A stretch of 64,000 nt of DNA from Fimbriosthenelais zetlandica (taxonomy: Eukaryota). This document shows, piece after piece, positions 21,582 to 42,900 of the stretch (its first letter is position 1; every line of letters begins with the position of its first letter). Where the stretch lies: contig OZ365113.1 in the NCBI GenBank assembly GCA_977030845.1, positions 33,852,001-33,916,000 on the forward strand, written 5' to 3'. The position numbers were made by a program, and so were the translations under genes. A model generated the notes under the pieces. It was not told the DNA's origin. It saw only the letters and a list, made by a program, of their open reading frames with translations, and ran no database searches.

Positions 21582-21739
21582 TCAAGTTTTGTCAGCACTT
21601 TTTTGGTTTTCCATCTCCGTCTCTTCGGTCACTTGGGAACGCTTCCACTTGTAGAATTTATACAAAACCAGATCGAAAAATTCAAATAATGAGATGACAC
21701 TTCCTCCGAGTAGCAGGCCCAGGTATCCCCCAACATCAC
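21582..21739 (-). CDS. DEG/ENaC last exon: TM2, GGS selectivity filter, short tail, TGA stop
   Basis: SDVGGYLGLLLGGSVISLFEFFDLVLYKFYKWKRSQVTEETEMENQKSADKT*. Confidence 0.92.
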
Positions 21740-24700
21740 CTAGAAAATAAAAATAACACTAAAATGGGGTTAAAAAAGGTTTCGTTATAAATCCCCTCCC
21801 AACAATGCATTTTACATAGAAGTTGTTAAAAAAATATAGGTTCCTTTTAATACTACAAATATGTTTTAATACTCACTTAAAAAGAGATCTATCGTGTATG
21901 TACGGATTTGTTTCACGTCTTGGTATTTTAGTTGAGCGAAATAGATGTCCACAGCAATAAAGTTCTTCCTGAATGAGGGGAAATATATTCAGAACTGTAT
22001 ACATTTATTTTAACTTCTAAGTTTTAAAAATTTGATTTGAAAATCCAAGGAAGAAAACTTACTTAAAGAATTCATCATCTAGACGGGTCTGTTGTATGTA
22101 TTTTTTATACTGATCTCCAGCTCTGGATAATAAACCTTTGATGTGGGCCCTTTTCCTCATCAAAGCTTGTGTGAGTTCAGATACAGCCTGATGGATTGGC
22201 TTATTGTGCCACACCACCAACTCCTCCAGAACCCTCGATGGGTTAGAAGCCAAAAACTGCTTCACTGATCCCATTGGAAACTTGTCCTCATCAAATATAA
22301 CAATTTCTGGTATCTCCACATTGGCCTTTGGGTAGTAAAATATCTTGAGTGATTTAAATGTGGAAGACTTATAATTGTTACCAAGGAAAAACGCGAGTTT
22401 GATTTCGACGTTTGCTAATGTTAAATATGTGTCCTCAGCTAGAGTTTGTAGCTGGATCAAGTGTTGCTTTATTGGATCAACAAAACTTGATGTAATGCTA
22501 GACACGAAGTAATCCACCTCCTCCAATGTTTTTGTTTGTTCTTCAAGACTGAGGAAATTGTTAAGGTCTTCCCATGTTAGGTACGCTGTGCGGAAGCTCT
22601 TTAAGTTTTTGGCAACTTTCTCTTGAAAATTCATCAGTGGTAGAGATGTATCGTAATAGTCCAATATGTTGTCAATGCTACCTTTTTTGTTAAAGGACAT
22701 TAACATTGTATTTACTCTTAGGATTGCATCTGCAAAGTTTTGCTTCCAAGATGCAATCGTCTCAAGTAAATTTGTATATTCCTCAGTGCATGGTAGGAAC
22801 TGTCTTGTTGTCATTTCCAAACGAATTATGTTGGTGACAAATTCTTGATTTGTTTTAAATTCCACACTGTCAAACTGTTGCTGGATTATGTCAAATCCAT
22901 GTCTAAGATTTAACAAACGTCCCTCACATTCATTACTAAACAGTTTCTGTGGTAGAAGCAGATGCATATCAGACCCTTCATCCACACCACTCATGATGGC
23001 AGCAATGGTATGGTTCAAATGAAAATATCCCTCTTTCAAAGCTAGAATTTGATTTCGAAGTAAAATTTCTTCCATCGTGCTGTTTGCACTTGGTTGTGGC
23101 ATAGTTGATAGTTGGTGCAATAGTCTGAGGCTAATGAGGAATCCCTGCAGCATTCCCTTTAGACTCCTGATGTTCAATCCATAAAAATAGTCAAAGGCAT
23201 TGTATAGATCTTCCACTTTCCATAATAACGTGTTGGATAAATCAGCAGAGAGTACATGATCAAGAAAACTTTGCATGACGAGGTGCATTCTCATGATTTG
23301 TGAACCTACTGGAGACCAAATCCTATTTCTTGTGAAAGCGAGGATGTCTTTGTATGCAACGTCCAGAGCTGAAAGTTTGTCCAAATCTTCCAGGAATGTG
23401 TCGGAATTGCTTCTGTAGTTGGTTTCTTGTATATCCAAGTATTTCGTTAGCAGGTGATCCAGGTTACCCTGGACAAGTTGACCAATGTTTAAGCTGGATA
23501 TGGCCCCATATGACAGCTGGCTTTCATATACCTTTCGGAAACAGGGTTCGATGCAGCCACAGTCAGAAAAAGATATGTCTGCAAAACCTGAAAGGATCCA
23601 AGACACTATTTTAGAACAACAAAAAGGTATGGTGGCATCTTTGCTCCTATCATATAGAAAAGTCATTGGTTGACTGAAGGCCGATATGACTTACCGGTCC
23701 TTTCAATAGTCAAGGCACAGTTGAGGTACTTGGACACATTACATATTGGCGGATTAACTGAAATGTCCAGAAAGATTGACTTTGACATCATTGAAATTAA
23801 AAATAATCATTATTAATGGAACATCACTGCAATACATTAAAATGTATTGGAGGACGAGGCAAATAGATCCAACACTCACCAGCACTGCAATACATTGTCT
23901 GCTTATACAGCAGGTCTTATTTGAAAGAAAAAATGTTTTAAATAATTTAAATTTCATTGATCTTTTGAACGCTTACATTCGTTGAAGCCAGGCATGTAAC
24001 TGTCCCTACAGCCACACATTTGAAGCATAGCCTGGGTCTCACACTCTCTGACACAGGAAGAAAACGTATAGGTATTGGTATAGTTGAGTGTTGCTGTACC
24101 ACAGGATCCCCAGGGTGGTCCTAGACTCTCCGTCTGTTAAAATATGGAGGTTAAAGAACTAAAATAAACTTACATTCCCTGTATGTATGCTACAAAAAGG
24201 CAGGAATAACATGGGTAGGTCAGTCAATGCATTCAATAAACACGAGTTTATAATTGCATTACTCCAGAAAAGAAATAAGATAATTTCTCATAATTGCACT
24301 GTTAACTTAAAAAAATAACCAGAAAACTATGTATAGAGACAGATCAGAGATTGTGCCATGGTTTGTATTCACCTGGGTCAGCTTAACTGCCACCAGGGCG
24401 TGACTTCCTGGACCGACAGAAAAGCCCAGGTCTCGGACAAAAGGCACCTCCTGCTGATCGTGCAGGAATATCTGCAAGAAAAAGTCTTTGCGTATTAGAT
24501 GAACATTAAATATGGATATTCAATATAATGTATGGACTCCATTCCCAGTATATTCACAAACGACATATTTATGACACAACAGCAGCGGATCCAGTATTTT
24601 GGAAAGTGGTGCACTGTCCAGAACTGAAGGCAATTACTTTAAGGTCTTACTTTAATTATAGGTAGCCAAAATGACCAAAGGACCTGCAGGGATATTTTAC

Positions 24701-27700
24701 CTTCATCCCAGCGTCTCCATGAGGCCCTTTCATGTACTCATATTGTTCTATGTTGAGTAACAGTCTCAAGCCAGATGAAGCTCCTGTGGAGAAAAGACGC
24801 GAATAAGACCAAGAACTATATATGTACGTGTATTGGACATATATTGTCCATAGATACATGAGTACAAAGTATTTGTGAATAGTTTATATGTTCTTACCAG
24901 TTCTAGCTGTGAGCAAGGTGTTATTAAATGTGCCTATGTTGAAGGTGTGACAGAGGCCATAATCTGTGATCTGAGTTGTAAAGTTCTCCCCAGAGCAGGG
25001 ACTTCCTCCCCACGAACATCTGCAAAGTTAGACTTCCTTATATTTTTGTATTATATGATTGTGTATTGTGTGAGAATTAACATTGTATATGGACATCACC
25101 TATACCAACTTTATTACACTGTTGATCTGAAAACCTGCTTCTTAATTTCTAGATGTATCAAATCCCATTTAAACTTATACATGTACTTGTAAAAGAAAAT
25201 GTATCGGGCAAATAATTAGATGAAGACTAACCCATGTATTAGGTCCTCTACTTGATGTCCAAGCTCATAGAACATGCTTGTCAAGTCATCAGCTGAAAGG
25301 AGGGTCAATGATTCATTTAATGCGGCAAATAGCATCACAATATTGACATACAGATATTAAACCACAGATAGTTGAATATGGTGGCGGATCCAGAGGCCCT
25401 TTTCGACCCCCAAGTGTCCTTCACGGACTACAAATGCCCTTTCTGACTCCTAAGTGACCTTTCTGACCCCCAAATAGGTTATTCAAAGGCAGATAGTGGA
25501 CATTAATTGCAGAAAGAAATCTAGGCCCTAGAGTTCCTGTTTAGTATAGTGCATCTGGGGTCCAAAAAGCGATGCTGCCACCCCCTACCACTGCCCTCTG
25601 CTATTGTCTCCGTATTCTGGGTGCAATGGGATGTAAACTGCCCATTTCCCATAGCACCCTTCCTCTGGAAAATCCTGGATCCACCCCTGAAGTGGTACAA
25701 ACGGTCATATATTGTTGTTGGTATATACCATCCCTGTATGTATCCTCCAGTGTTCTGTCCTCATCTTCAAAAATAGTGTCAACGGCTCCAGGATCTCCTG
25801 GTGCACCTGGAACCCCATGATGTCCTCTCATGTCATAATCTGAAATATTATGTAATAAGAATACAGAATTATGTTACAGAGGTCCAAGGGTTTACTCGAA
25901 ATAACCCCCAGAAAAATAACCAATTCTTTCAAGGAAAAGATGAAAATATCAAATGACGCTTATGTAGACTAAAGCCTGGAGCACACTAATCCAATTCTCT
26001 ATCCGGCTCCATCCGATAGCTGTCGGAAACTATATTTCTATTCACACAAATTTGAAAGACCTTTACACCTAGGTGAGGGTGACGATTGACAAAATTTCAA
26101 TCGTTGGATGCCATTAGAAATTTTGGTATGAATGGTGACTTATTGGAGAATCGGATTAGGGTGTTCCAAGCTTTAGTTTATAAAGTATTTTCAGGCCTCA
26201 CCACCACGATTACGATCACCCACTGGACCTGGACAATAAGGGGGTAGTTCATCATCTCCAAGCCAACAATCACGCTTCCCATCACACAACAAGAATCTAT
26301 CAAGACATTTGTAAAACTTTCCAGAACACACATAGCCTGGACAGGCACCTGTAAATAATCAATAAGATTAATTTGGAACGTTGATTGTTTAAAGACGGCC
26401 AAGTACAGTGCTCCTCCCCTAAATCGACCGGACGGTCGGATGTGGAGGAGCGATGCTTTTGCTGCTGTAGCATATATAAGCATTGATGAGGCCATGGGCT
26501 AAACTGGTTCTCTAATAATTTGGATTCGATGATAATTAAGAAAATGAAGAAATAACTCATACAACGCAAATCAACCCACCTGGAACTTCACACTGTCCTG
26601 GTTCTGCTTTGATCGCTGATATAGTTAATCCTGAATCTTCATATAATCCAGCACTCACCAAAAGTCTGTAACTACCAGGGGACACCTGAAACTTCACCAA
26701 AGCTTCACCGACTTCTCCAGAATACACGTTCTCAGCCCATAACAGTAATGAGCTTTCTCCCTCGTTTACATCGGTATTATTAGGCTCAAGGCCTGAAGCC
26801 AATTCTCTGTTTGTCCATCTCTGTTCGTCTATTCCATATGAAGCATTATAAACATTTAGTTTTATGGGATCTCTACCACTAGTCCTGATCTTGGTGAGGT
26901 TTAAAGTCACACAGTGATAGAGTTCTGAGGTCAAGGTCGGGGAAAGTACCAATGCTTCTCCTCTACGTATTGGGCCTCCCAAAGGCAGGTGTGTTCTCAA
27001 CCCTAGGATTAATAATAAAGGGAAAATAACCTCGGGATTATTCACAATTGATATCGAAGTATATTTGCATGCAGTACATACATGGCCTTTTTATTTATCG
27101 AATACATGAGAAGTGAGAAATGTTCTTTTTCTTACCTCGATCATGAAGAAGCCACGAGGCAAATGATCTAGAAACATCCAAGTAATTGCACACTTCCCCA
27201 CTATAAAACTCACAGTCAAGGCCACCATCTTTGACTGAAATTTGAAAAACTGCAGGTAAATATTTGAAACAATTTGGAAAGAGCATCTAATTGCACTGTT
27301 ATGTATACTTACATTTTTCCACGCACGTTTCATGGCTGATATTCACATTGTTCAACTTGATCCTGTAATCGTCGACCTCTCCTGTACAGTTGAAGACAAA
27401 CTGCAGCCGTGTCAGATTATTTAGAGACAAGAGACTCACAAAAGTCGAACGCCAATAGTTAGACCCAGCTCTGAGTTGCTCAGCATCTCCCGAAACAATG
27501 TCGAGGAGCGTTTGTGAATCCGGATGCAACTGATAAACAGAGAGACTACAAATGCCAGAGGAGATGGCCATGTTGTGGTCTATCTGGAGGCAGCTGGGTC
27601 CAGCCAGCATCAGCCAGGCAGATGACAGGATCTTCCTTTGTAATTCAGAGACAGAGGATGCTGTGATGGAGACAAAACTGCCTGGAAAAATCATATTAAG

Positions 27701-30700
27701 TACAGTTAAGAGATGGAGGTGTAAAATAATTCCGTTCAATTTCCTTTGGATAGCCTGCAATTATTATTATGGATTTAATGACAGAATCTCAAGCCTACCG
27801 TCTCTTTCCTGTGTGAATTGCCAGCCTTCCATATCAGGATTAGAATAATCAATATAACCACATATAAAGCTCTCACTGAAATCACAGTCAAATCTCCTCT
27901 CTAGAAGTCAAAATGCAAAGCAATAATATATTAAGTGCTAAATCACCATCTATGACCCATATTGCAGGACTAATTTACCAGATTACTAAATTAATTGACT
28001 TTCTTAGGATCACAATTAGGTTCTGGTAAACTATAGCTAATTAAGTTTCTAAGGAAATTCACCTCTTAAGGTCATAAGGACAAACTTTAGGAAGGTCAAT
28101 TAGATGTTTTTCTGATTCCTCTTCGAATGACACAAGGTTTTATATTGGATTACATGTTAAAGTTAGAAATTGGAAAGTATATTATTAGCATTTTAGATTT
28201 CTAGTCATACTTGGATCACACACTGCACCATCCTCATCTGAGAAGTCCTGACAGTGGACCACCCCGTCACATAATGACGTCATGGAGACGCACTCACTTC
28301 CGCTGTCACAGAGTACCTCGTCTGGCCAACACAATCCTACATTACAAACAATTTATGTGTCATTAAACATCAAAAGTTCACAATTTACTCCACTTTTTTT
28401 GTAAACTATAATCAGCATGATGACCCCCATATTTGAGATAATGGCAGCAAGTGACGTTTGCTATGCCTTGGTCAATTCCGACCAATCAGAGGTCCCCAAA
28501 CTTTTCCTGCATCATGGCACATATTGGTTCATTCTGATCATTCTGATCTAACCATAGAAATATATATAGTTCTATGGACTAACGAAAGAGCTACCTTGAA
28601 AAGTAACTTTCCCTTTGGCCTCGCAGAACTTACGTGTATCTTGGTTTTCACAGTCATGTCTCAGCTTCACGTCATCAATGGCCATGTCACTCAGGTATGG
28701 TTCACCAAGCACCGCCTCAAACACAATCCAGTAAGCCACTACTTCATTCACAGTCATATTCCTGCTGTAGTACCTCCATATATCACTCAGATCACTAGTA
28801 CCACTCACTCTGACCAATCTCTGACGGAGATATTTCCCAGTGTATTTATACACAATGATTTCCCCCATAGACTCCGGGAAGAAGGTGTCCTTAGCTGTGT
28901 AAGCATGGAATTCTAGGCATTCTGGAATATCGTTTGATGAAATGTGCATTGGGGTAGATATACTGATGCGTTCTCTTTCAGTTCGTGTGATGGTTCCAGA
29001 ATCTAAATAGAGGTAATGACCTGAAAGGGAAAAAAATAATTATATTCAAGAGATTAGAATCAAGGTAAAAGGGTGGAAAGTATTTTAAGGTTTTACCTTT
29101 GGCTGTTTGTGTGGTATGATCCAATGTTAAACGGCCATTTCTCATCCGGCCCTGATGTCTCTGCCACTGTGTCTTTTTCCTACTTCCTCCTTCATACCCA
29201 CAGATTTTTGGTGATTCAAAGTTGCAATCGACTTCTTTGACTTGAAATTCAAGTGATAATATTTCAATTAGAAGGCTGAGGCATTCTGAGCGGGCAGTTT
29301 CAGTCGGTCAAATATGCCTGAACCTTTCGACCTCCACTATTAAAATTGCATGAGATGTATGAGAAAACTTACTACAAGTATTGATTTCATCCGAGAGGTC
29401 AAAGCAGTCATATGTCCCATCACAAATAGCTATCAGAGGCACACATTGCCCACTCTTGCATCTAAACTGGTCATCCCTGCATTCTGTTAAAGAAAAACAT
29501 ATTATTACCTGTACCCACTTCTATAGGAAGATTTCTTACTTCTCAGATTGACAAGTATGCACATTCCCGACAAGGATCTATATATTCTTGAATTGCATCT
29601 CAGAAGTCTAGACTGATTTTTCAGAATTGAATAGACCAGAACTACCTAATGCAGTATAGGCCTATAATAAAAACACAAATTATTAAATATTTTACCACAA
29701 TATGGAATGGAACAACCAGAAGTTTCAGGGAACACTGAGTTCCCGCGCGTGAAGCACCAGGGCCCATTGGGATTGTCATCTGGGTTTCGGCAGTATGAGG
29801 CAGCGCCATCTACCGACCCTTCCAGGAAGTCACTGTCTGCTGTAAACGACCTGATGCTGGGGTCTGACCAAGGCAGGCAGGGGAAACCATCAGACGCCAG
29901 GGAAATATTACCAAGATATTCAGTACCAAGAACGGTCATTCTGCATTCCCGATAACCCAAAGCTGAAAATATTTAAAAACAATTATAAATGTCGTGTGCT
30001 TTATTCTCACGATGCATATAGAACCATCTGTTATGGGTCCTCAAAATTCTGCTAAGAATCGCTTGTTAAAATTCAGGGTGTTTGATTTATTATGAAATAC
30101 TCGTCTATTACGTCCATTTTCCTACTGCTTCATTTTGGTTAATGTGCTAACAGGTTGCGATCAGGTCATCTACTGCCACCATGTAGCAAAACCTGGAACT
30201 ATGGTGGATTTGACCCGGAAGTGGAATAACAATAACAACGCATGCGTGCGTGAGTCCAAGATTCCAAGATGGCCGACATGGCAGCCAAAAGGGGCATATT
30301 TAACATTTCAACAGTTGAAAAAGCAGGAATTACTTCACTTTGAGGAATTGTCAAGATCCCCAAAACAAAGAGAAGCTGTATGAGTACATGGCCGTGTGTT
30401 GTGAGGGGTTGAGCCTCCATGTCATTCGTTTTTTGGTCTACTAACATCATGAAAACCTGGGCGCTCCAGTTTCATCACATGGTCATGGCTGCTGCAAACG
30501 GTGAAGGTAAGTTCTTATTCTAGTAATATTAAAACTATTAAAGGGGGTATAGTCAAAACTATAAACTTACTCAATGTTTCACATCTGTCTATCTTTACAT
30601 CATCCAATGCTACATGGCCTTTACTGTTAAGGTTGTTTATCCCAGGCTTAACATGGACTTGGTAGAGTCCTGTGCCCAGGTAGAGGAACTGCCTGTTCCA

Positions 30701-33700
30701 CAGTTGTCCCTTTGTTACGGTCAGGCGGTGTGTTGTGATTATATTCTCACTACTGTCAACCAGGTTGACACTGAGAGAGTACCTAGTGAAACAGAGAGAG
30801 TACTTTGGTGTCGAATTTTCACCAAAAAAATCAGAAATATGATTAATAAATCTTAGATGTATGATAATGACGGAATTTTCAAGCTGAAACAAATTCACAT
30901 TTACAAAATGATTTACTACTGTCAATTGGCTATAATGCTTCCAGTACCTGCTGCTTTCCAATGTTGCATTAGAAAAGCTATAAGAAATATCCATACAGAG
31001 CGGCTGCTGAGCTTGTAGGTAAGGAGTGAAGAGGTACGGAGGTGAGAGGGGATTGGCTAATGCTGTATCATCCAAATACAAATAGGAACCTATAAGTAAA
31101 AGTGAGATACAGTTCAGATCATTACAGCAATTCTATTTATTATTAAAGGCATAGATTAAACGAATTATTTCAAATCAGGTTGATCGGATCTTGCGGTTCC
31201 AAGTGGTGCACATATGCATTTAATAAAATGAATAGACAATAAGTTGGGCCTAGACTAACCTATACGTGTATAGATATAGCAAGAAGATAAGCTCACGAGC
31301 AACATATAGCCATAATTTTATGATAGATCAAGATAGATAATAGAAAGACACAGTACATGACATGCTGGAAGGCACTTCTCCGAAATATTCAAAAGCCCTT
31401 TAGCCGTTTTATGGAGTTGTAACATACGAGGGAGGTCCTTGCAATAGTTGATCCATCAATATTATAAAGGAATACTTGAGCTATATAGGATTATAACTTG
31501 AGAGCGTATAGATCTTGGCTGCCTTTGAAGAAAGAAAGGAATTTTTAAGCTTATTTATAGATCTATGATATAATTTCAGGGCAAAAATATCTCATTGTCA
31601 AAGAAAACGCTCCCAGATCCAGTAAAGTAACTGTGAATAAAGGCCTTGTATAGAGATGATCCAACCTGAATCCAGATGGCAGAGGTGTAATGTTGGGTCG
31701 GGTCCTGCTCATGACATATATAACAGAGGATGCAAACAACATATTATCTTAATCCAGAGAAATATCGCCACTTATTCCATGGTTAATGTGAGGGTGGGCA
31801 GTATGGAGCCAATACTGCACGCTCCCAAAACAAGCCATACTAATTTCTACTAGAGACTGGCAGCATTCGTGATAGGCCCCTTAAATTTTCCCTCTAACTA
31901 CTGTAGTTTTAGCTTTAATAACTGACTCTAATAACAAGTAAACTGAAAGAATGTGTTACATTACCGAATTGTCTATTAAAAATTCAAGTGAAAAAACTAG
32001 TAAAAGCTAATTTCCATGTATGTAAATCCACAAAATGCTCTTTCAGTATTTGTCAATAGGATGGCAACATGCTGCCTTTGACAACATGGGGATATATTCA
32101 TAGGATAGTTTCCATTAGTATATGATATAAAACACTTACTATGAGACTTTTGATAAGTTTCAATATTTACCATAGATCTTAGTATGGTCACGATTTGGAC
32201 CTCTCTTGAATGTTTCTGGGGTTCCCCTCCTCCATACATCCCCGGAATACTGCTTGTCCTCATATAAAGGACATGGCCGACCTCCTTCAAAGTCACATAC
32301 AATACTCACTGCAACAAAATTCATAGATTATCTCTAACCCATCAATGGTTATAATGAAGTCCTATCTTGCCAGGTGCCATAACCGTCTGTGAGGACATTA
32401 ACTAAGCTAGGGATAAAACATGTATTCTCGATCAGGGATGCCAAAGAACACTTGTTATGAATGAATGAATGAATGAATGAATGAAGTTATTTGCCTATAT
32501 AGGCAGTTCTGACCTTAGATATATAGTTAATTAAACTACAAGTTATAGCTGGTTGATGTATCAGTTAATAGAAATCAATTCCTAAACATGACATCACTGA
32601 ATTCTTAAAGGGAGGCCAAACACTTTGTATAAAGTTATTTTCCTTAGATAGTTGATTTCACCACAAATAATGTCACAGGATGTCACATGTTGGTTAGCCA
32701 ATCAGAGTGAGGAAGGGGCTGGGCACTGTCATTTTTCTACACAAGGTGCGCCTTGTAGTAAAGGAGCCAGTGTTGTTCTTCGGGGCCTTAAAAGTGCAAT
32801 GAAATATGAGATCAGAACTCACCTGGACATCGTTTCCTCACATAGACATCCGATTCTCCATGAAAGACTTTCCTAATAAGTGCATTTTCAGGGATCAAAG
32901 TGAAGATATCACAATATTTCATGTAATTGTCGTACATAAAAGAGTTACAAGTGTTCCCATGATACTTCACACAGAGCATTCTACACAGCTTTTTGGTGAT
33001 TTTCCGATACCGTGTCGTCCTTCTTCCAAACATAACAATTCCTCGTTGTATATCAAAATCATCTTCTTGGCAACCTATATCAGGATACAAAGAACAAGAA
33101 GATATGATAATTCATGATATACATTCAGTATAGATTAAAGTGAAATCAATGGGGAGTGGATTTGAAGCTTTTAATTGCAGAGTCCAGAAAAAGTTCTTAA
33201 AAAGCATAAAAATTAAATCAGTTTCTCTGGACTATGGTTGTGAACACCCATCCACCACCTCTTGCGTTACCTAATTTATGGAGGGCCCTATATCTTACTT
33301 TATACTCCATCTATGCCTGGAATATATCAAGAGGCCTTTTATCTTAATATCCGACCAGAGGACTCTTATCCATGGCAAGGCAAAAAACATACCATGGATA
33401 TTTACCCTGGGTGGACACGCCCAGACCAGCAAACACGCCTCTTAAGCAGTGATCATAGAAGCGGGGCAATATTGAAGATTGCAATAATGGTCAGTGGTCC
33501 AGGGTCATCAAAACAGGCAGTGAGAGGTTGGGCAAGAAAGTGGCAAAAAACAATTTGGGCAAATAAAATGATATCTGAAATGAGGTTCCTGACTTCATAA
33601 CCTCCAGATCCACCATTTCAGATCAATTGGACATGGAATTCCTTGATTAAATGAGGATAATAGTCTACAGGTTAATAATTATTATTATAGTATTAATGCG

Positions 33701-34388
33701 GACTCACCGTCGGTAGGAGAACTATACTTGTGAATTGAATTGTTGAAGGTATCTTCGATGACATCGTAGACACCAATTTTGAAGGCTTTAGATGCCCTGA
33801 AATCGTATGAATAATTTATTGATGCAGCAATTGTTTTGCTTCCTAAAATTGATATAGTAATCTGTAAAAATACTCACCTGAAAGTATTTTGATTGCAAAG
33901 GGTGACAGCAGGAAAGGGAAGTTCTTGAGTGTATATAATTTCAACATTCACAGCTTTTGGATGAGACGAAAGACTCAAAATTTGTGTGATGACAAAATAG
34001 AGGAAGCCAGCCAGAGCTGCCAAGGTTACCAATGCCCATAGCAACCTGAAAATACGAACCACAATAATATCATTTGAGATATAAAATTCAGGTATACGAA
34101 AATGATGGGGAAATGATATATGAGGTATTGTAAATAATCTCATGTTCTAGACCTTCTAATGACAGGTAGGAATTTAAAAAAATACAAGGAATGTTTTCGG
34201 TGAGATACATTATTTATTAAGCCATGTTCACTGACATCTACAAGTTAAATGTTTTTAAAATAAATATAACTCAAATATTGTCTACCTCCTTGAAAAGTGA
34301 GAAGTTTTGTCGGCAACATATCGGATACCGTGAAATGTTGTTTCTTCTGAGAAATCCACAAGAATTTTTTTCAATTTCTTGGAGGCAC
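21582..34388 (-). CDS. DEG/ENaC (amiloride-sensitive) superfamily channel with multi-domain finger insertion and long helical knuckle insertion, ~1,920 aa, 27 exons; start exon upstream not fixed
   Basis: Family motifs appear in the correct order: ETTFHGIRY, TM1, FPAVTLCNQN, LGHQVEDLIHGCSWGG..C, TDYGLCHTFN, GLRLLLNIEQ, LHDQQEVP..GF.V.PG, YTFSSC..EC....CGC, C.C..PC...Y, NFIAVDIYF..L.Y, SDVGGYLGLLLGGSVISLFEFFD. Exons: 34388-34286, 34045-33878, 33796-33708, 33074-32823, 32308-32171, 31089-30948, 30782-30571, 29962-29696, 29483-29373, 29240-29097, 29020-28634, 28336-28211, 27900-27799, 27681-27313, 27249-27136, 27002-26580, 26348-26202, 25839-25729, 25292-25232, 25019-24898, 24783-24701, 24471-24373, 24133-23977, 23757-23695, 23578-22063, 21968-21877, 21739-21582. 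All junctions are GT-AG and frame-consistent. Confidence 0.9.
22063..23578 (-). CDS. DEG/ENaC 1.5-kb exon: end of thumb/beta10 plus ~460-aa helical insert
   Basis: The 535-aa ORF in the track. The exon begins DISFSDCGCIEPCFRKVYESQLSY (acceptor could also be 23587) and ends RLDDEFF|K, joining NFIAVDIYF. Confidence 0.85.
25379..25689. mobile_element. MITE-like element with imperfect CAGGGGCGGATCCAG-type terminal inverted repeats
   Basis: Left TGGTGGCGGATCCAG (25379-25393), right CTGGATCCACCCCTG (25675-25689). Intronic. No target-site duplication seen. Confidence 0.5.
26202..26348 (-). CDS. Channel exon: LDL-receptor class A module 3 (divergent)
   Basis: CPGYVCSGKFYKCLDRFLLCDGKRDCWLGDDELPPYC. 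Confidence 0.75.
26580..27249 (-). CDS. Channel exons: MAM-like domain 4 (27249-27136, 27002-26580)
   Basis: LDCEFYSGEVCNY...SW ... LSPTL....HCV ... ISAIKAEPGQC. Divergent MAM pattern. Confidence 0.65.
27313..27900 (-). CDS. Channel exons: MAM-like domain 3 (27900-27799, 27681-27313)
   Basis: FDCDFSESFICGY.....GW ... ILSSAW....PSCLQI ... YWRSTFV ... LNNVNISHETC. Confidence 0.7.
28211..28336 (-). CDS. Channel exon: LDL-receptor class A module 2
   Basis: CWPDEVLCDSGSECVSMTSLCDGVVHCQDFSDEDGAVC. Confidence 0.85.
28634..29240 (-). CDS. Channel exons: MAM domain 2 (29240-29097, 29020-28634)
   Basis: CNFESPKICGY...QW...LDHTTQTAKGHYLYLDS ... ECLEFH ... MAIDDVKLRHDC. Confidence 0.85.
29373..29483 (-). 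CDS. Channel exon: LDL-receptor class A module 1
   Basis: CRDDQFRCKSGQCVPLIAICDGTYDCFDLSDEINTC. Confidence 0.9.
29696..29962 (-). CDS. Channel exon: kringle domain
   Basis: ECRMTVLGTEYLG......G.PCLPW ... SYCRNPDDNPNGPWCFT ... CSIPYC. Confidence 0.92.
30571..32308 (-). CDS. Channel exons: MAM domain 1 (32308-32171, 31089-30948, 30782-30571)
   Basis: CDFEGGRPC...W...GPNRDHTKIYGSYLYLD ... PLCMDISY ... W ... GHVALDDVKIDRC. Confidence 0.85.
32823..33074 (-). CDS. Channel exon: PAN/apple-like domain
   Basis: CQEDDFDIQRG...ITKKLCRMLCV....TCNSFMYDNYMKYCDIF...SDVYVRKRC. Has the C...C..CxSFxY...C spacing and the terminal YxRxC typical of PAN. Confidence 0.75.
33878..34388 (-). CDS. Channel exons: pre-TM1 HG gating motif (34388-34286) and TM1-beta1-beta2 (34045-33878)
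   Basis: KKILVDFSEETTFHGIRYVADKTSHFSRR|LLWALVTLAALAGFLYFVITQILSLSSHPKAVNVEIIYTQELPFPAVTLCNQNTFR. Confidence 0.9.
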
Positions 34389-35641
34389 CTGAAACTTGAA
34401 ATAAGACACTGATAAAAAGGATTTAAAGCGGCTCTATCACCAATCTTAACCTAGTACAGAGAGTCAACTCCCCAGCCAATGAAAAGCCTAGAATATGGGT
34501 CAAACTGTGCGAATTTAGGTCAAACTGGCATAGATGCAATAGATCTCAGCTGAAATAGACTGTCACTTGAGCTATCAGCACAGATGTGGGATGGTGCTGC
34601 TTCATGTGATAGTTCTGAAGTGAAGAGCTGGTGGAGAGGAGATATGGACCGTTATATAGATGACGGGTTCTTTAGTAAACTCAGTGTTTTCCTCTTACAA
34701 GATGCAGTGTACGATAACTGTGAGTTTGTAAATTTATGTCAGTGTTTTGACAGAAGTCACCTGAAAACTCTACAAAGCGAGAGATGCTGATATAAAAAAC
34801 TTCCTCCAAATGTTCAGAGGATGTTCCAAAAGCTGAGTGTTATTAAAGGTGTCCACACACTAATCCGATTTTCCACTCGTCGCCATCTGATCCCCCATTT
34901 TTAATGACATCCAATGACTGAAATTGTGTCCAAGTGGTTACCCCTTACCCTATAGTCTGATTTTGATAGTGATCAGTGTTATGTAGCAATACATTAAAAT
35001 TATCTTTTATTACATGTCCTAGCTCACTACAAATCACAGCTAGCTAGCCAGCTAGCTATAGATATCTTGCTTTTGTCTGCTGTCTGAACTATAACATATT
35101 CATAGCAATTCATGTACCAGGAACTTTGGAAACATCAAAATGATTTTTGTCGAAGACTACTCGGTAGTAGGCACCATTACTAGGTAATTACTTGGCAGTT
35201 GCACAACTATATACTATAGTTAGAAGATATATATACTAAGACGGCCACGGCCGAGCGAGCTTTCTCGCTTCTCCCAACAGGGCAGCTGGCTTTTGGGTCA
35301 GGGGTAAAAAGTATATTTGCCATAGAACCATGGGATTCGGATTAATAACTTTTATAAGACTTAAAAAAGGGATGGGCGGGGTTGGGGGCACATTCACTGG
35401 TGCATATAACGCGAAGCTAATTTACATCAGATACTTTTTTATTTTAGACACAAATAGAATGTTATAACATCATTGCATGGATAAAAATTGTAGACAAACT
35501 TTACTGGACACAAATTAATGAACTTCTTTATGATATTCACTTTTGTTTCTTTCATTTCAGTTTAAATTCCTTGTGTCATGCATTATGATAACTTCAGATA
35601 CCAGTACCTGTGACAAGCAATGACTGAATTAGACTTTTTCT

Positions 35642-36913
35642 CTAAGAAGTGTAAAGTGTCTTATTCCTGCAAGCATTCCAGTAGGTGGTGAAGTATTGTG
35701 GTCGTACCCCATGAATTGCCATCCAGTTTTTGTCATAAGGACATGTAATGTTAGCGTTCACGGTGGCCATTGATGGGTGCGGCACCAAATGAAATCCCCC
35801 TAAATTCATTACAGTCGCTTTCTTCGTACCTTTATACATCGCTTGCATCACTAGTGCGAAATAAATATCCTCTAGAACAAATATAGGAACATTTGGTGAC
35901 GTGTTCATCATTTGAAGTGTCAAATTGTAGGATGTTATAAAGTTTGTACCTACACAATAAGGAGGGAGTGATTTATTCGGGTATTCATTCCAGGTTAAGT
36001 AAAATTTGGACTTTACGTAGCGGACTGGTTTTGACCATACGTAACATTTTCCTACGATAGCTGACTGTAATTTATCTCTGTCTCTGTTGACTAGTTCAAT
36101 GATATTCGGTACATTGAGAAAATTATCATCAGCTGTTCTCACCACAAAGCGCGCCATGTTGCAATGTTTCTTAAACCAATGATATCCACCAAGGACTTTG
36201 ATGGAGAGATTGTAGTAAGAATCGATATAGTCATCCTGCTGTATGTCACCAAATTCTCTAGATTCAGCATCCACTATTTTCTGCTGGTCTATGGGCCAGC
36301 CCGCCCCAAACAGAAAGATATGCCTTGAAATATTACCAGTTATTTTCTTACTAAATGAGGCCCAAGTTTGACGAATGGCCTTTCTCTCAGCAACAGCACT
36401 AGGCACTGTAGTTATCAGCAGTATAATATCCACTTTTGAATGCCCATCACAGACTTTGGGGACAATTAAATTTTTATATTGGTATTTGAAACAATTGTTA
36501 CATTCTTTTTGTCTCACATGTCTTGGAAACGTCCTTTGCCACAAATACTGATGACCTCCGAGAAAACGTATTTCAGTGGGCAAGTAACCTTTAGAATTTG
36601 TATCCCGTTTCCATGGCATAAATCCATCCTTAGGTAGATCTTGCTTTCTACTTCCTCCGTTTTCTGACCCGTTTCCTATGCTTCCTAATTTGGTTGCTGT
36701 TTTTTTCATAACTACATAGTATCTGTTAATATGTTCTCTCATAAATCCGACAAAGTCCTTTCCACTTTTTTCCAGATTTTCAAACGTGGATAGGATAATT
36801 GGTTTAGAAGAAGTTTGTGTCGTTCTGATAGTGTGTACCTGTGTTTTAAGTATAATCACAAAAGGGGAATAGAAACATAGACAAGCTAGTAACAGACGGT
36901 AGGTACATGCCAT
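35642..36913 (-). CDS. GT31-family beta-1,3-galactosyltransferase-like type II membrane protein, single coding exon
   Basis: Likely start ATG 36913 (AATATGG). N-terminal hydrophobic anchor, then LLITTVP...ERKAIRQTW, HIFLFG, ESREFGDIQQDDYIDSYYNLSIK, RTADDNFLN, YPNKSLPPYC.G, EDIYF and IHG motifs. The exact subfamily cannot be assigned. Confidence 0.88.
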   Translation of the reverse strand: MACTYRLLLACLCFYSPFVIILKTQVHTIRTTQTSSKPIILSTFENLEKSGKDFVGFMREHINRYYVVMKKTATKLGSIGNGSENGGSRKQDLPKDGFMPWKRDTNSKGYLPTEIRFLGGHQYLWQRTFPRHVRQKECNNCFKYQYKNLIVPKVCDGHSKVDIILLITTVPSAVAERKAIRQTWASFSKKITGNISRHIFLFGAGWPIDQQKIVDAESREFGDIQQDDYIDSYYNLSIKVLGGYHWFKKHCNMARFVVRTADDNFLNVPNIIELVNRDRDKLQSAIVGKCYVWSKPVRYVKSKFYLTWNEYPNKSLPPYCVGTNFITSYNLTLQMMNTSPNVPIFVLEDIYFALVMQAMYKGTKKATVMNLGGFHLVPHPSMATVNANITCPYDKNWMAIHGVRPQYFTTYWNACRNKTLYTS

Positions 36914-38955
36914 ATTTCCATACACATACTCCTGTTATAGGCCTAATCATTATGTGTAGGTCTATACTTAGGCCTATAACCGCTTACGTATTGGTCCCAT
37001 TCAGCTCTGGATACTAGGCTTGAGTTTAGCTTGACAGGCTAGACAGTCTCCTCAACTTTGGTCAAAGAGTATTTGTGCCCTATATAATATACTCCTTGTT
37101 TTGGTGTAGAAATTTTGAGTAAAAATGAAATTGTTCAGTAGAGCAACTGGGTGACTGGAGCCGGGGAGATTATGAAACTTGGTCAGGGACCTTTTCCAAG
37201 ATGCGGAGGTATATGACTGCTAGTGCATAAAACTACGAGAAGTGGGCCAAAATATAATTAGAGCAGAAACAAGCTTCTCAACAAATCAGGGAATGGCCAG
37301 GCCTATATGACTACAGGGTGACAGCTCTTGTATTCTCATGGGATTTAACAGTTCCCTCCGTGACACAAGTATAGGCATATAACCCATATAAGTCTACAAT
37401 GTATACGATAATGACTATCATGGCAGACATGCTACATACATAATATGCCACTAATGTTGGAAAGAAGGGTACATTTATAGGGGACCTTTTAGCTTGCTAT
37501 TAGGGTATAGGAAAACATTTGAATCTATTCAGCGCGTCATCCCTCTTGACTGAAATAATAAACGGGAATCGAAATCATCTGTATGTTTCTCTATATTGCT
37601 TCAGTACTTCACCAGTTGGCCAATTCATATAAAAGGCTTCTGCAGGTTTACCCGCGGCTCTATCATTTCACCTCTGTTCTTCAACTCATTAGGGCTATTC
37701 AAATTTTTAGACACTTTTTGTTCAAAAACTTTGAACTTGAAATAGCCACCTCCACTAACCAATAAGCGCCCACAATTTTAAAAGAACCTGGATCATCTGC
37801 CCTTTTTCTACCCCTGTAACGCCTGAAAATGGCGTATTAATGAATATTACAGCAATAATAAATCGTACAAGGTACAACACAATTTAATGCTTGACATAAA
37901 AGTGTGACTAGAACTATATAATTCTGCTGACATCTACCAGACAATGATCAACCTAGAATATCTTAGAATCTGGGTCAAACAATGCGCATCTAGCACGAAA
38001 TTTCTAATTGTCATGAGGAGAGAAGCTTTACGTTCAGTGATAGTGATAGTGCAACTTTAATAATTTTATGCCAGGCATGCGTGGGAGTGTGGGACATATA
38101 TTTGACATGATTCTTTGTGACTCTATAAGCTACTTCTATATAGAATCACCGGGTAATTTTATTACCATTGTCGTGATGTTAGCCTAAATATACCCTATGC
38201 TAATATATTGATCTTTACTTAATGGTTTTTTTTTTAATCAGCAACTACATGGTAAAGCTCTATATTTTATCAACTGGAGGTACTCATGGGTTATCATGGG
38301 TATAAATGGAGCATATAAAACAAACCAAGATAGATGTTCATGTACTTAGAAAAAGATTATCTTTAAATCAAATTTTTACCCAGAAATTTCTCGGAAGAGG
38401 TGATAAACACATGAGCTGTTGCTTGGTGTTGAGTCTTTGGTTATAAATAATGAGTATATTTATGTATAGTGCGCATGGAACAGGCGGAGTTAAAGAGCTG
38501 GAGATGAGATGTAATGAGTCGAAGGAACTGATAGGGAGGTACTGCAGTGATACATGTATACATAGTTATATATAATGGCTCTATTTTAATTTAACATATT
38601 TAGAACCGTACTAGAAATTTCTGAGGGGGCCTCTTGGGGCTGCATGTCTCCTGCAAGGAACAGCCATCGATACTTATCTTTGTTCCAAATCTCGCAATGT
38701 TTAAACATAAGTTGTACATAAAAAGGGCTAGAAGTGTTAATATATGTATTGAAAATGCATTATGCTTTCCCTTCTAATCGTATTCTTTACATGTACATTA
38801 TATTGTGTGTATATATCAAACTAGATATCAAATTTCAAATTTATAGACCTTGATCTGAAGCCTACTGTAGGCTGAAAAGTAGGTTGAAACAACCGAAAGT
38901 GGTATGGTGAAACAAAAGGTCTATAATAATAAAATGAAGAAGAACGTCAACTAAC

Positions 38956-39971: not shown

Positions 39972-42900
39972 TTATCCAGAATTACTGATAGATAGTGTCT
40001 TTGTTGAACCACTCGCTTCGCCACTACTAAGCCGTCCACATATGTCCTCCGCCACTTTCTTTCTCAAAACATAACTGACGAATATAACCACCCCTTGTGA
40101 CGCATTGAGAATAATGAATATAATCCATAGAGCCTCGTGGCCAACAAAAGCAGCCACGAAGCCCACAATCCAGCACACTCCCATGAGAGCGGCCAGTCGT
40201 AGGTGGACTGTGGCGTTAGGCCGCTGAACTGTAGACCTGATCTTGGTCTGAATGATTCTACGTAGGTTCAATATTGTCATCACCAGAAACACAATAGTTA
40301 AGATCTGACAAACGGCCATAACCACTCCAAAATATACCAACAGGGCATACCTCTGATTGAACCAACAAAGCTGTCGTCCAAAATCTGGTTTAAACCTGGA
40401 GTCAATGTCGGCAAAGTCTAAGCCGATGGCAGCCATTGTAATCAAGGCGGAAAACCCCCATGAGAAGGCTATGTATAGACAAAGGGTCGTGCGTCGCCGA
40501 CTTGGTGCGACTAGGGTGCGAGAAGGGCGAAAAGTGGTCCAGGTATCTATTGATACAGTCATCATGGAGAAAAAGGCCGCCATGAAGAACCAATACAGAA
40601 GAGCTCCACTAACAGCGCAGCCTAGACTCCCTCTGGTCTCCTCCCCTCCACTAAATACAGTAAACCTCCCATCCTGAGACAGGCCAGTGGATGGCTTGTG
40701 ATCCTGACCGACCCTACCAGCCACGAGAATCATGAGAAACGCCAGCATGAGAGCCAGGCAGAGATTAGCCTGCATGCGGCCAGCGAAACTATCAAAGTAC
40801 TTAATAAACAACTGGAGTATTAACCTGATGAAGAGACAGATAATAGATAGGGACAGGAGAACCAAAGAGAGGATAGACAGAATGTTTGTTACATGAAGGT
40901 TGACTCCATTCGCCATCTCTGACTCTGGCACACAGACAAAAGCCTTATCCCCTGATATCTCAAACTCCTCTTCTATGAAATCTTTTTTCACAGTTTTTAA
41001 ATTCAAAGTACCATTGATTAAGCTGAACTCGTCCTTGTCAAACGAAAACCATTTACACCTCATTAATCTTTGGTGACTGAAGACAATGGATTCATCGATG
41101 TCTACTTGAACTAGTCCAAGATCTACGTCACCTTCTCTTAAAGCTAACAGTATCTGATCTTTCAAAAAATGACTGACATTCACAGTCATTGACAAGAACT
41201 CAAATTGAAAGGTAGAATTAGCATCTACTTCTAAATACAAACTGAACAGTACTTCCATATGATAAAGAGATGTCGCATTCACACTTTGGACAACTTTCAT
41301 CACTAGATCTGGCTGATTGTTCGTATGGCCAGATTCGTTCAGCTGTTTTTGAATGACTCGCTCAATTTTTTCTGGAAGTTCTTGTCTCTTGAGCCATTTT
41401 TCCATGAGTTTTCCATCGTCAGACCTGTTAAATATCAGCGACAATGTCGCAAGTTGGACCGTTTGATTGAGAAGGTGGCATTCATCGTCAATCAGTCGTA
41501 GGTTTCCAGGACAAGCATACCGCTGACATTGCGTTGATCCGCTGACTCGGGCATGGTGCTCCGGGCAGGGATGCTGTCCTACAGTTAACCCAGCTGCCGG
41601 GTTAAAATCAAATAATATATTCAAAGCAGTTCCAGGTGGGCGGATCCCAACAAGACAGTTTGCTTCATAAAGACACTGCGACATTCCCGCATGACCTGCA
41701 CACATTGCACAGTACCTATTCCTGTAAATATCTGACCCCGCCTCAACAAAGTCTGAGGTGCCATTTCCCTCACATGCAGCCACTAATTCAGGGTTGTCAC
41801 AGGAGGTTTCACATTCCTTGATATGCGGTATGCAATATGGCCGTAAGTAATCTCCTGCTCTATAATCAAGAACAAAACCAATGAAGCATTCTGGGTCACT
41901 GAGCTGTTGCAGCAGATCATCTTGCGTACTAATATTTCTCATCTCGATGTCATCGTCTTGTGGCTGAGCTTCTGGATCATAATCATAATCTGAATCATAA
42001 TAATAAAATGGAGAATCCCTGGTGCAGAATACCTGCGGCTCTAGATGAGCCGTCCGAGTTGCTCCGTTGCACTGAGCGCATCTGAAGTTAACATAGGTAA
42101 TTCCACTGTCAAGATCTGTCACTGGGATTCCCAGATTTGGATCTGTCAAGTCCCCAATACGGATCTCGCAGGTCTGGCCCGTGGGTCCACAGATAGAAAC
42201 AAAGCTGTACGACTCGTGAGGACATCCCATACCGCCGCCACTGATCTCTCCATCAAGGATTGTTGGAAGATCGATACACACACTCTGCCTGTACTTGAAT
42301 TGTCTCAGATATGGTTCAACTGTCGCTAATTCCTCCGGACAAACCTGTTGGAAATCTGGGCAGCAATCTTCATAAATCAGGCAGAGCGCATCACAGGAAC
42401 AGAACCGAGAGTAGAAATAGTCTTTATGGACGCCACAGTTCTCCTGACATGTACCGCAGTTGGGTAAGGGTGGAGGCAATGGGGATCCTGGTTGACAGTA
42501 AAGATTGACAGCTGACACAGACATGGGAGCTGTCACTGTCAACAACCAAACGACCCACCATACCTAAACATGAAAAACAAGAATTAGAATGTGTGTCTGA
42601 TTCCCAAGCTTTCAAGCAAAAGTGCAAAATAACAGAAAGTTTGAGAAAAGATTTAATTAAAAATGAAACCACATACAGTACATGTACACTGACTCTTTCA
42701 TAATGAAGCAGGTTAGAGAGATAAGTCGATATTGAATTACCTTAAGTTGCATTCATAGTCGCTATATGATTTCTGGGTTCTTCAAATGAGTTACACTTTG
42801 CACATCGATATCTTCATAATCTTACTCTGTAAACTTGCATAAAATAACGCATGGTCCTAGCTAAAGTGTGCCCTTTTAACCAGATATCATCCTTTATTGC

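Follow-up and report, generated by a model that had tools for sequence, protein, structure and literature searches.

A probable giant DEG/ENaC channel subunit with a cassette of extracellular binding modules in its finger

Gating of DEG/ENaC channels is thought to act via a compact finger, in response to protons, peptides, proteases, or force. The finger sets gating in ASIC, ENaC, and FaNaC: in FaNaC and ASIC it is the site of action of peptide ligands and modulators, and in ENaC the corresponding interval holds inhibitory tracts that are released by proteases. The MEC-4/MEC-10 touch channel, also a DEG/ENaC channel, is believed to couple with extracellular proteins that bear binding modules. 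How extracellular tethers are coupled to DEG/ENaC channels is a long-standing question. Here, we describe a DEG/ENaC gene whose finger probably carries an array of such modules.

The gene lies on the minus strand of the window (the whole 64,000-nt stretch of DNA that we analyzed). The channel core around the cassette is complete: it includes an HG motif, TM1, the palm and thumb, and TM2 with a GGS tract. Both of the membrane-spanning exons match the DEG/ENaC family (Pfam ASC, PF00858; 48.4 bits for the TM1 exon and 21.6 bits for the TM2 exon). By direct reading, the HG motif is present before TM1 (TTFHGIRYV, in the open frame at 34285-34422), and the G/S-x-S tract is present in the TM2 exon (GLLLGGSVISLFE). 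For the beta-ball, palm, and thumb, successive exons match positions 154-191, 192-231, 230-267, 267-329, and 401-433 of the ASC profile, and the flanking exons combined cover positions 21-79, 154-329, and 401-454. In the PDB, the channel core matches ASIC1, ASIC2, ASIC5, FaNaC, and ENaC; the closest solved structures by sequence are ASIC5, FaNaC1, and ASIC. As is typical of this family, the product may form a trimeric, amiloride-sensitive cation channel. A second long insert, which is helical, lies at the knuckle, later in the channel gene, and is carried by a 543-aa exon. This exon had zero matches at E <= 0.001 when used as a database query. A galactosyltransferase gene is the neighbor of the channel gene. 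We also checked the window for a second copy of the gene, but tblastn found only weak module-to-module matches within the cassette, and none outside the gene.

The anchor exons place the cassette in the finger, as a previous reading from the letters of the DNA (the sequence-only reading) had proposed. Specifically, the insert falls between residues 100 and 171 of chicken ASIC1 (6ave). For ENaC, these two exons align at ~105 in the gamma chain and ~248 in the beta chain; for FaNaC, they align at 84 in one structure (8on7) and at 208 in another (7yvb). ENaC and FaNaC, too, have a longer finger interval than ASIC1.

In our splice model, the cassette comprises 14 exons from 33074 to 26202 (minus strand), or 2,919 nt and 973 codons with zero stops. 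All of its introns are GT-AG, and the module borders are uniformly in phase 1. Read from the spliced frame, the modules are PAN-MAM-kringle-LDLa-MAM-LDLa-MAM-MAM-LDLa. This is the cassette that the sequence-only reading had outlined, and we found all of its exons and motifs on the minus strand at the positions that were proposed; the spliced product contains DLSDE, DFSDE, LGDDE, NPDDNPNGPW, RRTTRYRK, and PKRRF. The proposed placement between LCNQNTFR..SPTD and FYELGHQVEDL also holds up: the cassette is compatible in phase with the channel on both sides (a phase-1 donor at 33708 and a phase-1 acceptor at 25839), and the nested build is conserved in two other loci (L001 and L002, see below). All of the modules in the arm are of extracellular types and are located in the extracellular loop. 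The arm has 10 N-glycosylation sequons and is without a membrane-like stretch. The 165-nt intron between MAM1 exons 2 and 3 (30783-30947) is open in frame.

We compared the window to three loci from unannotated animal assemblies. L001 and L002 are long contigs from other assemblies, and L003 is a short genomic contig. In both L001 and L002, the order of the cassette exons, the positions of the introns, and the phases agree with those of the window, and the cassette adjoins channel exons. L002 is collinear with the window from the N-terminal part of the channel and TM1, through alpha1, all of the cassette, the linker exon, and alpha3, into exons farther along the channel. L001 has the TM1 and alpha1 exons and a complete cassette; in the 5.4 kb available beyond it, we found no further channel exons. 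L003 contains three cassette exons, in order. The proteins from the window, L001, and L002 are 33-36% identical to each other, with 47/48 and 46/48 cysteines retained. The MAM2 body exon is 62% identical to L003 (dN/dS ~0.17), 48% identical to L001, and 41% identical to L002. Conservation is confined to the exons, and the introns have diverged. To have 973 open codons in 14 phase-matched exons, with 46-47 of 48 cysteines kept at 33-36% identity, is far beyond chance.

Table 1. Exons of the cassette and of the surrounding channel gene. Positions are in the window, except for the last row, which is in L002.
Feature	Position	Strand	Evidence and notes
DEG/ENaC exon with TM1 and the initial beta strands; last residues LCNQNTFR	33878..34045	-	Pfam ASC 48.4 bits, profile 21-79; phase-2 acceptor and donor; exon end aligned to residue 100 of chicken ASIC1 (6ave)
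DEG/ENaC finger exon, alpha1-like, ends in SSPTD	33708..33796	-	Phase-1 donor, score 7.5, in the same place in L001 and L002; L001 equivalent 59% identical
PAN/apple exon	32823..33074	-	252 nt, phase 1-1; Pfam PAN_1 16.9 bits
MAM1 exon 1	32171..32308	-	Pfam MAM 20.7 bits, profile 1-44
MAM1 exon 2	30948..31089	-	Splice model; aligns with the single MAM1 body exon of L001 and L002
MAM1 exon 3	30571..30782	-	Pfam MAM 23.2 bits, profile 87-157
Kringle exon	29696..29962	-	267 nt, phase 1-1; Pfam Kringle 53.2 bits, E 3.8e-14; 40-44% identity with the L002 and L001 kringles
LDLa1 exon	29373..29483	-	Pfam Ldl_recept_a 43.0 bits; DLSDE
MAM2 exon 1	29097..29240	-	Pfam MAM 26.3 bits, profile 1-43
MAM2 exon 2 (body)	28634..29020	-	Pfam MAM 41.8 bits
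LDLa2 exon	28211..28336	-	Pfam Ldl_recept_a 30.7 bits; DFSDE, kept at all loci
MAM3 exon 1, starts with KRRFDCDF	27799..27900	-	50% identical to L001, L002, and L003 by tblastn
MAM3 exon 2	27313..27681	-	Pfam MAM 27.2 bits; homologues 31.4 and 30.0
MAM4 exon 1	27136..27234	-	C-x-F...C-x-Y MAM start; tblastn/tblastx matches in L001 and L002
MAM4 exon 2, divergent MAM	26580..27002	-	hhalign to MAM1-3 profile, 96.7%, E 4e-10
LDLa3 exon	26202..26348	-	Variant cage W-x-G-D/E-D-E; Pfam 20.6 bits, L001 24.2; six Cys kept
Linker exon 3' of the cassette	25729..25839	-	Run of five Gly-X-Y triplets followed by acidic residues; phase 1-1
DEG/ENaC finger exon, alpha3-like, FYELGHQVEDL	25232..25292	-	tblastx, 45% identity to L002 15429-15488; phase-1 acceptor and phase-2 donor, likewise in L002
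DEG/ENaC exon, YGLCHTFN, first post-finger strand	24898..25019	-	Pfam ASC 30 bits, profile 154-191; aligned to 6ave residues 171-211
TM2 exon	21585-21758	-	Pfam ASC 21.6 bits, profile 430-454
Linker equivalent in L002	14936-15085		Four Gly-X-Y triplets

To check the identities of the modules, we compared the exons' open frames to Pfam (with cut-offs of 24.1 bits for Ldl_recept_a, 21.4 bits for PAN, and 26.4 bits for MAM). The kringle, LDLa1, LDLa2, and MAM1-3 from the sequence-only reading all score against their families. Its PAN and LDLa3 are below the cut-off in the window but above it in homologous loci, and its MAM4 is unmatched. For MAM (PF00629), a family with conserved cysteines at its start and end, the pieces of MAM1-3 score 20.7-41.8 bits, and the halves of each domain sum to more than 26.4 bits. 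MAM4 has no Pfam match at any of the three loci (the window, L001, and L002) and was recognized by profile-profile comparison only (to the profile of MAM1-3, across 137 columns). For PAN (PF00024), the homologues in L002 and L001 pass with 26.2 and 25.2 bits, and from these scores we accept the assignment at the level of the family. LDLa1 and LDLa2 have the six cysteines and the acidic calcium cage (D-x-S-D-E) of LDLa (PF00057), and L001 and L002 retain DLSDE or DFSDE as well. LDLa3 has the six cysteines but not the complete calcium cage (W-L-G-D-D-E here and W-Y/F-G-E-D-E in the homologues); as judged from these residues, it is a conserved variant module. The kringle matches its profile (PF00051) and has the six-cysteine framework. 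The paired Asp of the anionic center (NPD-x-D) in lysine-binding, plasminogen-type kringles is not conserved across this family: the sequence is NPDDN in the window, NPDDD in L002, and NPTAD in L001. Among the exon pieces, there were zero Pfam matches for EGF modules. The sequence-only reading had likened the PAN and the kringle to the plasminogen/HGF-type pairing, but a MAM domain separates the two, so this likeness does not hold.

The best reading of these results, and probably the correct one, is that a single gene encodes a giant DEG/ENaC channel subunit that carries its own binding arm on the extracellular side. Since the 14 exons are open, with conserved cysteines, at 33-36% identity in three loci, they are evidently used enough to be under selection. 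They are genuine coding exons and quite likely part of the surrounding DEG/ENaC gene. Presumably, the cassette exons are included in the mRNA.

Alternatively, the cassette might be facultative. In the main mRNA, the 14 exons would be largely or entirely skipped, giving a channel of ordinary size, and the arm would be present only in some cells or stages, possibly with variable sets of modules. The modules are all symmetrical (phase 1-1), so any or all of them could be skipped with the frame intact. In the splice model, a direct join from 33708 to 25839 is also in frame, and the splice-site scores are modest at several sites in the cassette (for example, the kringle donor and the acceptor of the first MAM2 exon). 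However, the conservation of the exons indicates enough use for selection to act, and we consider this alternative unlikely. It also overlaps with the giant-subunit reading and does not exclude it.

Another alternative, which seems quite improbable, is that the arm is under proteolytic control like that of ENaC: it would be an auto-inhibitory plug, and its excision by a protease would open the channel. The insert does lie in an interval that is also longer in ENaC, and the window's copy has basic clusters, which the sequence-only reading took for candidate cleavage sites. But R-x-K/R-R does not occur at any of the three loci, and the clusters are absent from L002 and partial in L001, with neither RRTTRYRK nor KRRF conserved at the aligned positions. 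A disulfide-rich array of ~970 amino acids also far exceeds the size of an inhibitory tract. Finally, it is very improbable that the 14 exons form a nested, independent gene for a secreted MAM/LDLa protein that happens to occupy a channel-gene intron on the same strand. In favor of this, stand-alone MAM/LDLa proteins are, among the matches listed, the nearest named relatives of the MAM2 exon, the pre-PAN intron of L001 has a Met-plus-hydrophobic open frame that runs to a phase-1 donor (L001:3400-3478), and the window's frame ends 3 codons beyond the LDLa3 donor. Against it, the alpha1-to-PAN intron is just 307-633 nt across the loci, and there is no such frame in the window or in L002 (307 nt). 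The sequence-only reading had also judged that the exons cannot form an independent gene; in the window, we found no exon with a start and signal peptide in the 633-nt pre-PAN intron, and the intron that follows LDLa3 lacks a poly(A) signal. The read-through tails vary in length and sequence among the loci, and the nesting, the order, and the match in phase with the channel have been maintained over deep divergence.

If the giant-subunit reading is correct, then the modules would have entered the channel gene through exon shuffling, because each is a symmetrical phase 1-1 unit. They lie in an intron that interrupts the finger, with the alpha1-like exon on one side and the alpha3-like exon on the other. 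This would give a giant subunit of ~1,900 amino acids, with an otherwise complete core and a finger that bears a cysteine-rich, glycosylated extracellular arm of ~970 amino acids. Since the solved members of the family are trimers, one channel would display three arms. The folds of the MAM, PAN, and kringle modules bind proteins, and LDLa1 and LDLa2 keep the calcium-cage motif; the arm might be a built-in receptor or tether. It would bind a matrix, cell-surface, or soluble partner, and the finger would be pulled or repositioned. We infer the binding and gating steps from the roles of these types of modules elsewhere, and both the assembly of the trimer and the coupling of the arm to gating are presumptive.

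More tentatively, this could be a new class of receptor-channel, in which three built-in arms in a DEG/ENaC trimer take hold of a partner from the matrix or the cell surface and directly control the gating of the pore. The arms might cooperate with the helical insert at the knuckle and with the short Gly-X-Y run after LDLa3. If so, this would be a self-contained tethered mechanosensor or a macromolecule-gated sodium channel. A natural fusion of ~970 amino acids of binding modules in the finger would offer a ready means of asking whether the pore is gated when the finger is pulled or occupied, and the arm provides a handle for seeking the physiological partner. The fusion would also be a clear example of modules shuffled as exons into the interior of an ion-channel fold.

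We did not find a published description or an annotated protein with this channel build. Comparing the MAM2 body exon to 1.84 billion representatives identified, among the matches listed, no protein with both a channel and MAM, and no match to itself; a word-based search with the same exon had one match, which was L003. In the literature that we searched, nothing relevant joins ENaC/degenerin (PF00858) with MAM, kringle, or LDLa. Such a receptor-channel would appear to be confined to a poorly sampled invertebrate lineage.

Of the named proteins among the matches listed, those closest to the MAM2 exon (~30% identity) are MAM/LDL-receptor class A domain-containing proteins (MALRD1/2-like), such as XP_035827621.1 from Aplysia and XP_055957693.1 from Patella. 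These have MAM arrays, and LDLa was confirmed in one of the five that were scanned. They are stand-alone proteins, and the channel segment is absent from all 150 of the closest MAM2 relatives listed, so the join of channel and cassette is without a curated gene model. MALRD1/2-like proteins are the likely source of what was shuffled.

EGAS-type subunits (EGF plus ASC) likewise combine DEG/ENaC with extra extracellular cysteine-rich modules, and in the cited study they gave no currents in oocytes. As described there, the extra modules are EGF, whereas here they are PAN, MAM, kringle, and LDLa, with ~970 amino acids in the finger, and the gene carries another long, helical insert farther along. 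The finger insertion of ENaC alpha and gamma (6wth, 9blr) expands the same interval, with the post-finger strand at ~248 in ENaC beta versus 171 in ASIC1. However, ENaC's insert is ~70-80 amino acids and is flanked by furin-type sites, while this one has ~970 amino acids of autonomous modules and no such sites. FaNaC1 (8on7), FaNaC (7yvb), and ASIC1 (6ave) have a compact finger and small ligands; in this gene, the finger would bear a multi-domain arm. For MEC-4/MEC-10, the partners are separate gene products, while here the binding modules would be within the channel polypeptide.

The window consists of animal DNA that is AT-rich (G+C of about 39%) and has short exons. On the minus strand, open frames with the hallmarks of the DEG/ENaC family extend between about 34.4 and 21.6 kb. 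In its core, the channel is a typical member of this family (see the table), and no 5' coding exon was located upstream of 34388. The open frames of the proposed cassette, which is an array of extracellular modules inserted in the finger of the channel, lie between the alpha1-like and alpha3-like finger exons. The same gene also has a 543-codon exon that holds the end of the thumb (CGCIEPC...) and a long, cysteine-poor, helix-like stretch; the last strands and TM2 come after this stretch. This exon matched no Pfam family and had no database relative of 300-950 amino acids.

Features of the channel gene and of neighboring open frames (positions in the window)
Feature	Position	Strand	Remarks
857-aa open frame	39972-42545	-	Intronless
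427-aa open frame	35642-36925	-	Intronless
HG motif TTFHGIRYV		-	DEG/ENaC hallmark
TM1 exon, ending ...LCNQNTFR		-	Pfam ASC, 48.4 bits, profile positions 21-79
Alpha1-like exon, ending ...SSPTD	donor 33708	-	Channel finger, before the cassette
Cassette	33074-26202	-	14 exons
Intron in MAM1	30783-30947	-	165 nt
Linker exon	25839-25729	-	Phase 1-1 unit; Gly-X-Y triplets, then acidic stretch; joins alpha3-like exon
Alpha3-like exon, FYELGHQVEDL	25292-25232	-	Channel finger, after the cassette
Later channel exons		-	ASC profile positions 154-329 and 401-454
543-codon exon	22062-23690	-	Single exon
TM2 exon with GLLLGGSVISLFE		-	Read in the open frame and by Pfam ASC

We built the exon chain by scoring every GT and AG site for each open frame, and one consistent chain resulted. 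The cassette's exons total 2,919 nt (973 codons) without a stop, and all of the introns are GT-AG. Every module border is in phase 1, and a further phase-1 intron splits the MAM bodies. The channel donor before the array (33708) and the acceptor that follows it (25839) share this phase, which keeps the array in the reading frame of the channel at both ends. MAM1 has an extra intron whose length is a multiple of three and which is open in frame; two related loci, L001 and L002 (described below), have an uninterrupted single exon at this place. Either this intron was gained in the window's lineage or, if it is retained, MAM1 has a 55-aa insert. Directly after LDLa3, the linker exon starts with five Gly-X-Y triplets (GHH GVP GAP GDP GAV), and the equivalent site in L002 (14936-15085) has four. 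The triplets form a short, collagen-like run, and the family to which this protein belongs assembles as trimers. The acidic second half of the linker exon may correspond to the finger's native alpha2.

We compared the separate exon frames to Pfam. The sequence-only reading had expected the modules to match their families, and this held for the kringle (53.2 bits), LDLa1 (43.0 bits), LDLa2 (30.7 bits), and MAM1-3 (pieces at 20.7 and 23.2, 26.3 and 41.8, and 27.2 bits), but in the window, LDLa3 (20.6 bits) and PAN (16.9 bits) fell below their own cut-offs, and MAM4 had no match. The equivalent exons of related loci scored higher for PAN (26.2 and 25.2 bits) and for LDLa3 (24.2 bits). When a profile built from three MAM4 sequences was compared to one built from nine MAM1-3 sequences, the two aligned end to end (hhalign, 96.7%, E = 4e-10), so by profile comparison, MAM4 is a divergent MAM copy. 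Therefore, the proposed order of PAN-MAM-kringle-LDLa-MAM-LDLa-MAM-MAM-LDLa stands, and all of the motifs quoted for it were found in the spliced product. The calcium-cage motifs of LDLa1 and LDLa2 are kept in the window, L001, and L002, and LDLa3 has a variant form that is itself conserved (W-x-G-D/E-D-E). The lysine-site residues of the kringle vary between loci. No EGF domain was found in the gene. The arm (the protein encoded by the cassette) has no membrane-like segment, has 10 N-glycosylation sequons, and consists exclusively of extracellular disulphide-rich modules in an extracellular loop, so its topology is coherent.

We searched for relatives of the MAM2 body exon with phmmer. None of the 150 relatives listed includes a channel segment; the named top matches are stand-alone MAM and LDL-receptor class A domain-containing proteins from Aplysia, Patella, Ptychodera, Branchiostoma, and Diadema. 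Two short matches led to long contigs in unannotated ENA assemblies (L001 from ERZ25767047 and L002 from ERZ26222911), and a third led to a Logan contig (L003). According to tblastn and tblastx, L002 encodes, collinearly and on one strand, the channel's N-terminus, TM1, the alpha1-like exon, all nine modules in the same order, the Gly-X-Y linker, the alpha3-like exon, and three more channel exons. L001 has TM1, alpha1, and the complete array, with no downstream channel exons within the available 5.4 kb. L003 has MAM2b (the MAM2 body exon), LDLa2, and MAM3a (the first MAM3 exon), with introns (tblastn). Intron positions and phases in L001 and L002 are the same as in the window, and their spliced products are open (for L001, with a neighboring donor chosen, which avoids one junction stop). 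Identity among the three arms is just 33-36%, and the alignment between loci is confined to exons, yet of the 48 cysteines in the window's arm, 46 and 47 are kept in the other two. For MAM2b, comparison to L003 gave dN/dS of about 0.17, with dS saturated. Because three queries from the window (the MAM2 exon, the helical exon, and the neighboring galactosyltransferase) found no identical protein in the collection, the window's own genome is absent from it, and these loci belong to other organisms. A second contig of ERZ26222911 (383 kb) has MAM exons related to MAM2 (P0136, 48% identity), so the organism of L002 probably has several arm paralogues. Also, the long MAM1-kringle intron of L002 contains a tandem repeat (6063-6708) without stops in any of the three frames.

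Alternatively, the cassette could be a separate gene nested within the channel gene. In L001, the intron before PAN does contain a Met-initiated hydrophobic open frame that runs up to a phase-1 GT (3400-3478). This frame could be an alternative first exon with a signal peptide, through which that organism would secrete the arm, or it may have arisen by chance. Against a nested gene, the window and L002 have no such frame in this intron, the intron is short in all three loci (633, 307, and 440 nt), and the window's intron downstream of LDLa3 lacks a poly(A) signal. Our conclusion from sequence comparison is that cassette and channel probably form one conserved transcription unit.

Two other open frames lie nearby. 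Relatives of the 427-aa frame, just upstream, carry the galactosyltransferase family PF01762, and the closest database match shares just 51% identity with it. The 857-aa frame, which looks like a secretin/adhesion-type receptor, is rich in cysteine in its N-terminal part and has several hydrophobic segments close to its C-terminus.

Given its module types and its position, the arm is best read as a built-in receptor or tether, which would act on the finger. Such a role in binding or tethering is more likely than an ENaC-like mechanism in which the arm is cut and released, because the basic clusters proposed as cleavage sites (RRTTRYRK in PAN and PKRRF before MAM3) are not conserved and furin-type R-x-K/R-R motifs are absent from all three loci.

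Full-text literature searches for ENaC or degenerin together with MAM domains, kringles, LDLa, or PF00858 found nothing relevant; the architecture of channel plus cassette is a new variation within the family. In chicken ASIC1 (6ave numbering), the end of the TM1 exon corresponds to residue 100 and the start of the YGLCHTFN exon to residue 171, an interval that is the finger (alpha1-alpha3) in the ASIC1 structure. In the window's gene, this interval is over 1,100 residues. It is also longer in ENaC and FaNaC, as judged by anchors from different chains: the end of the TM1 exon aligns near residue 105 in the gamma chain of ENaC and residue 84 in FaNaC1 (8on7), and the post-finger exon aligns near residue 248 in the beta chain of ENaC and residue 208 in FaNaC (7yvb).
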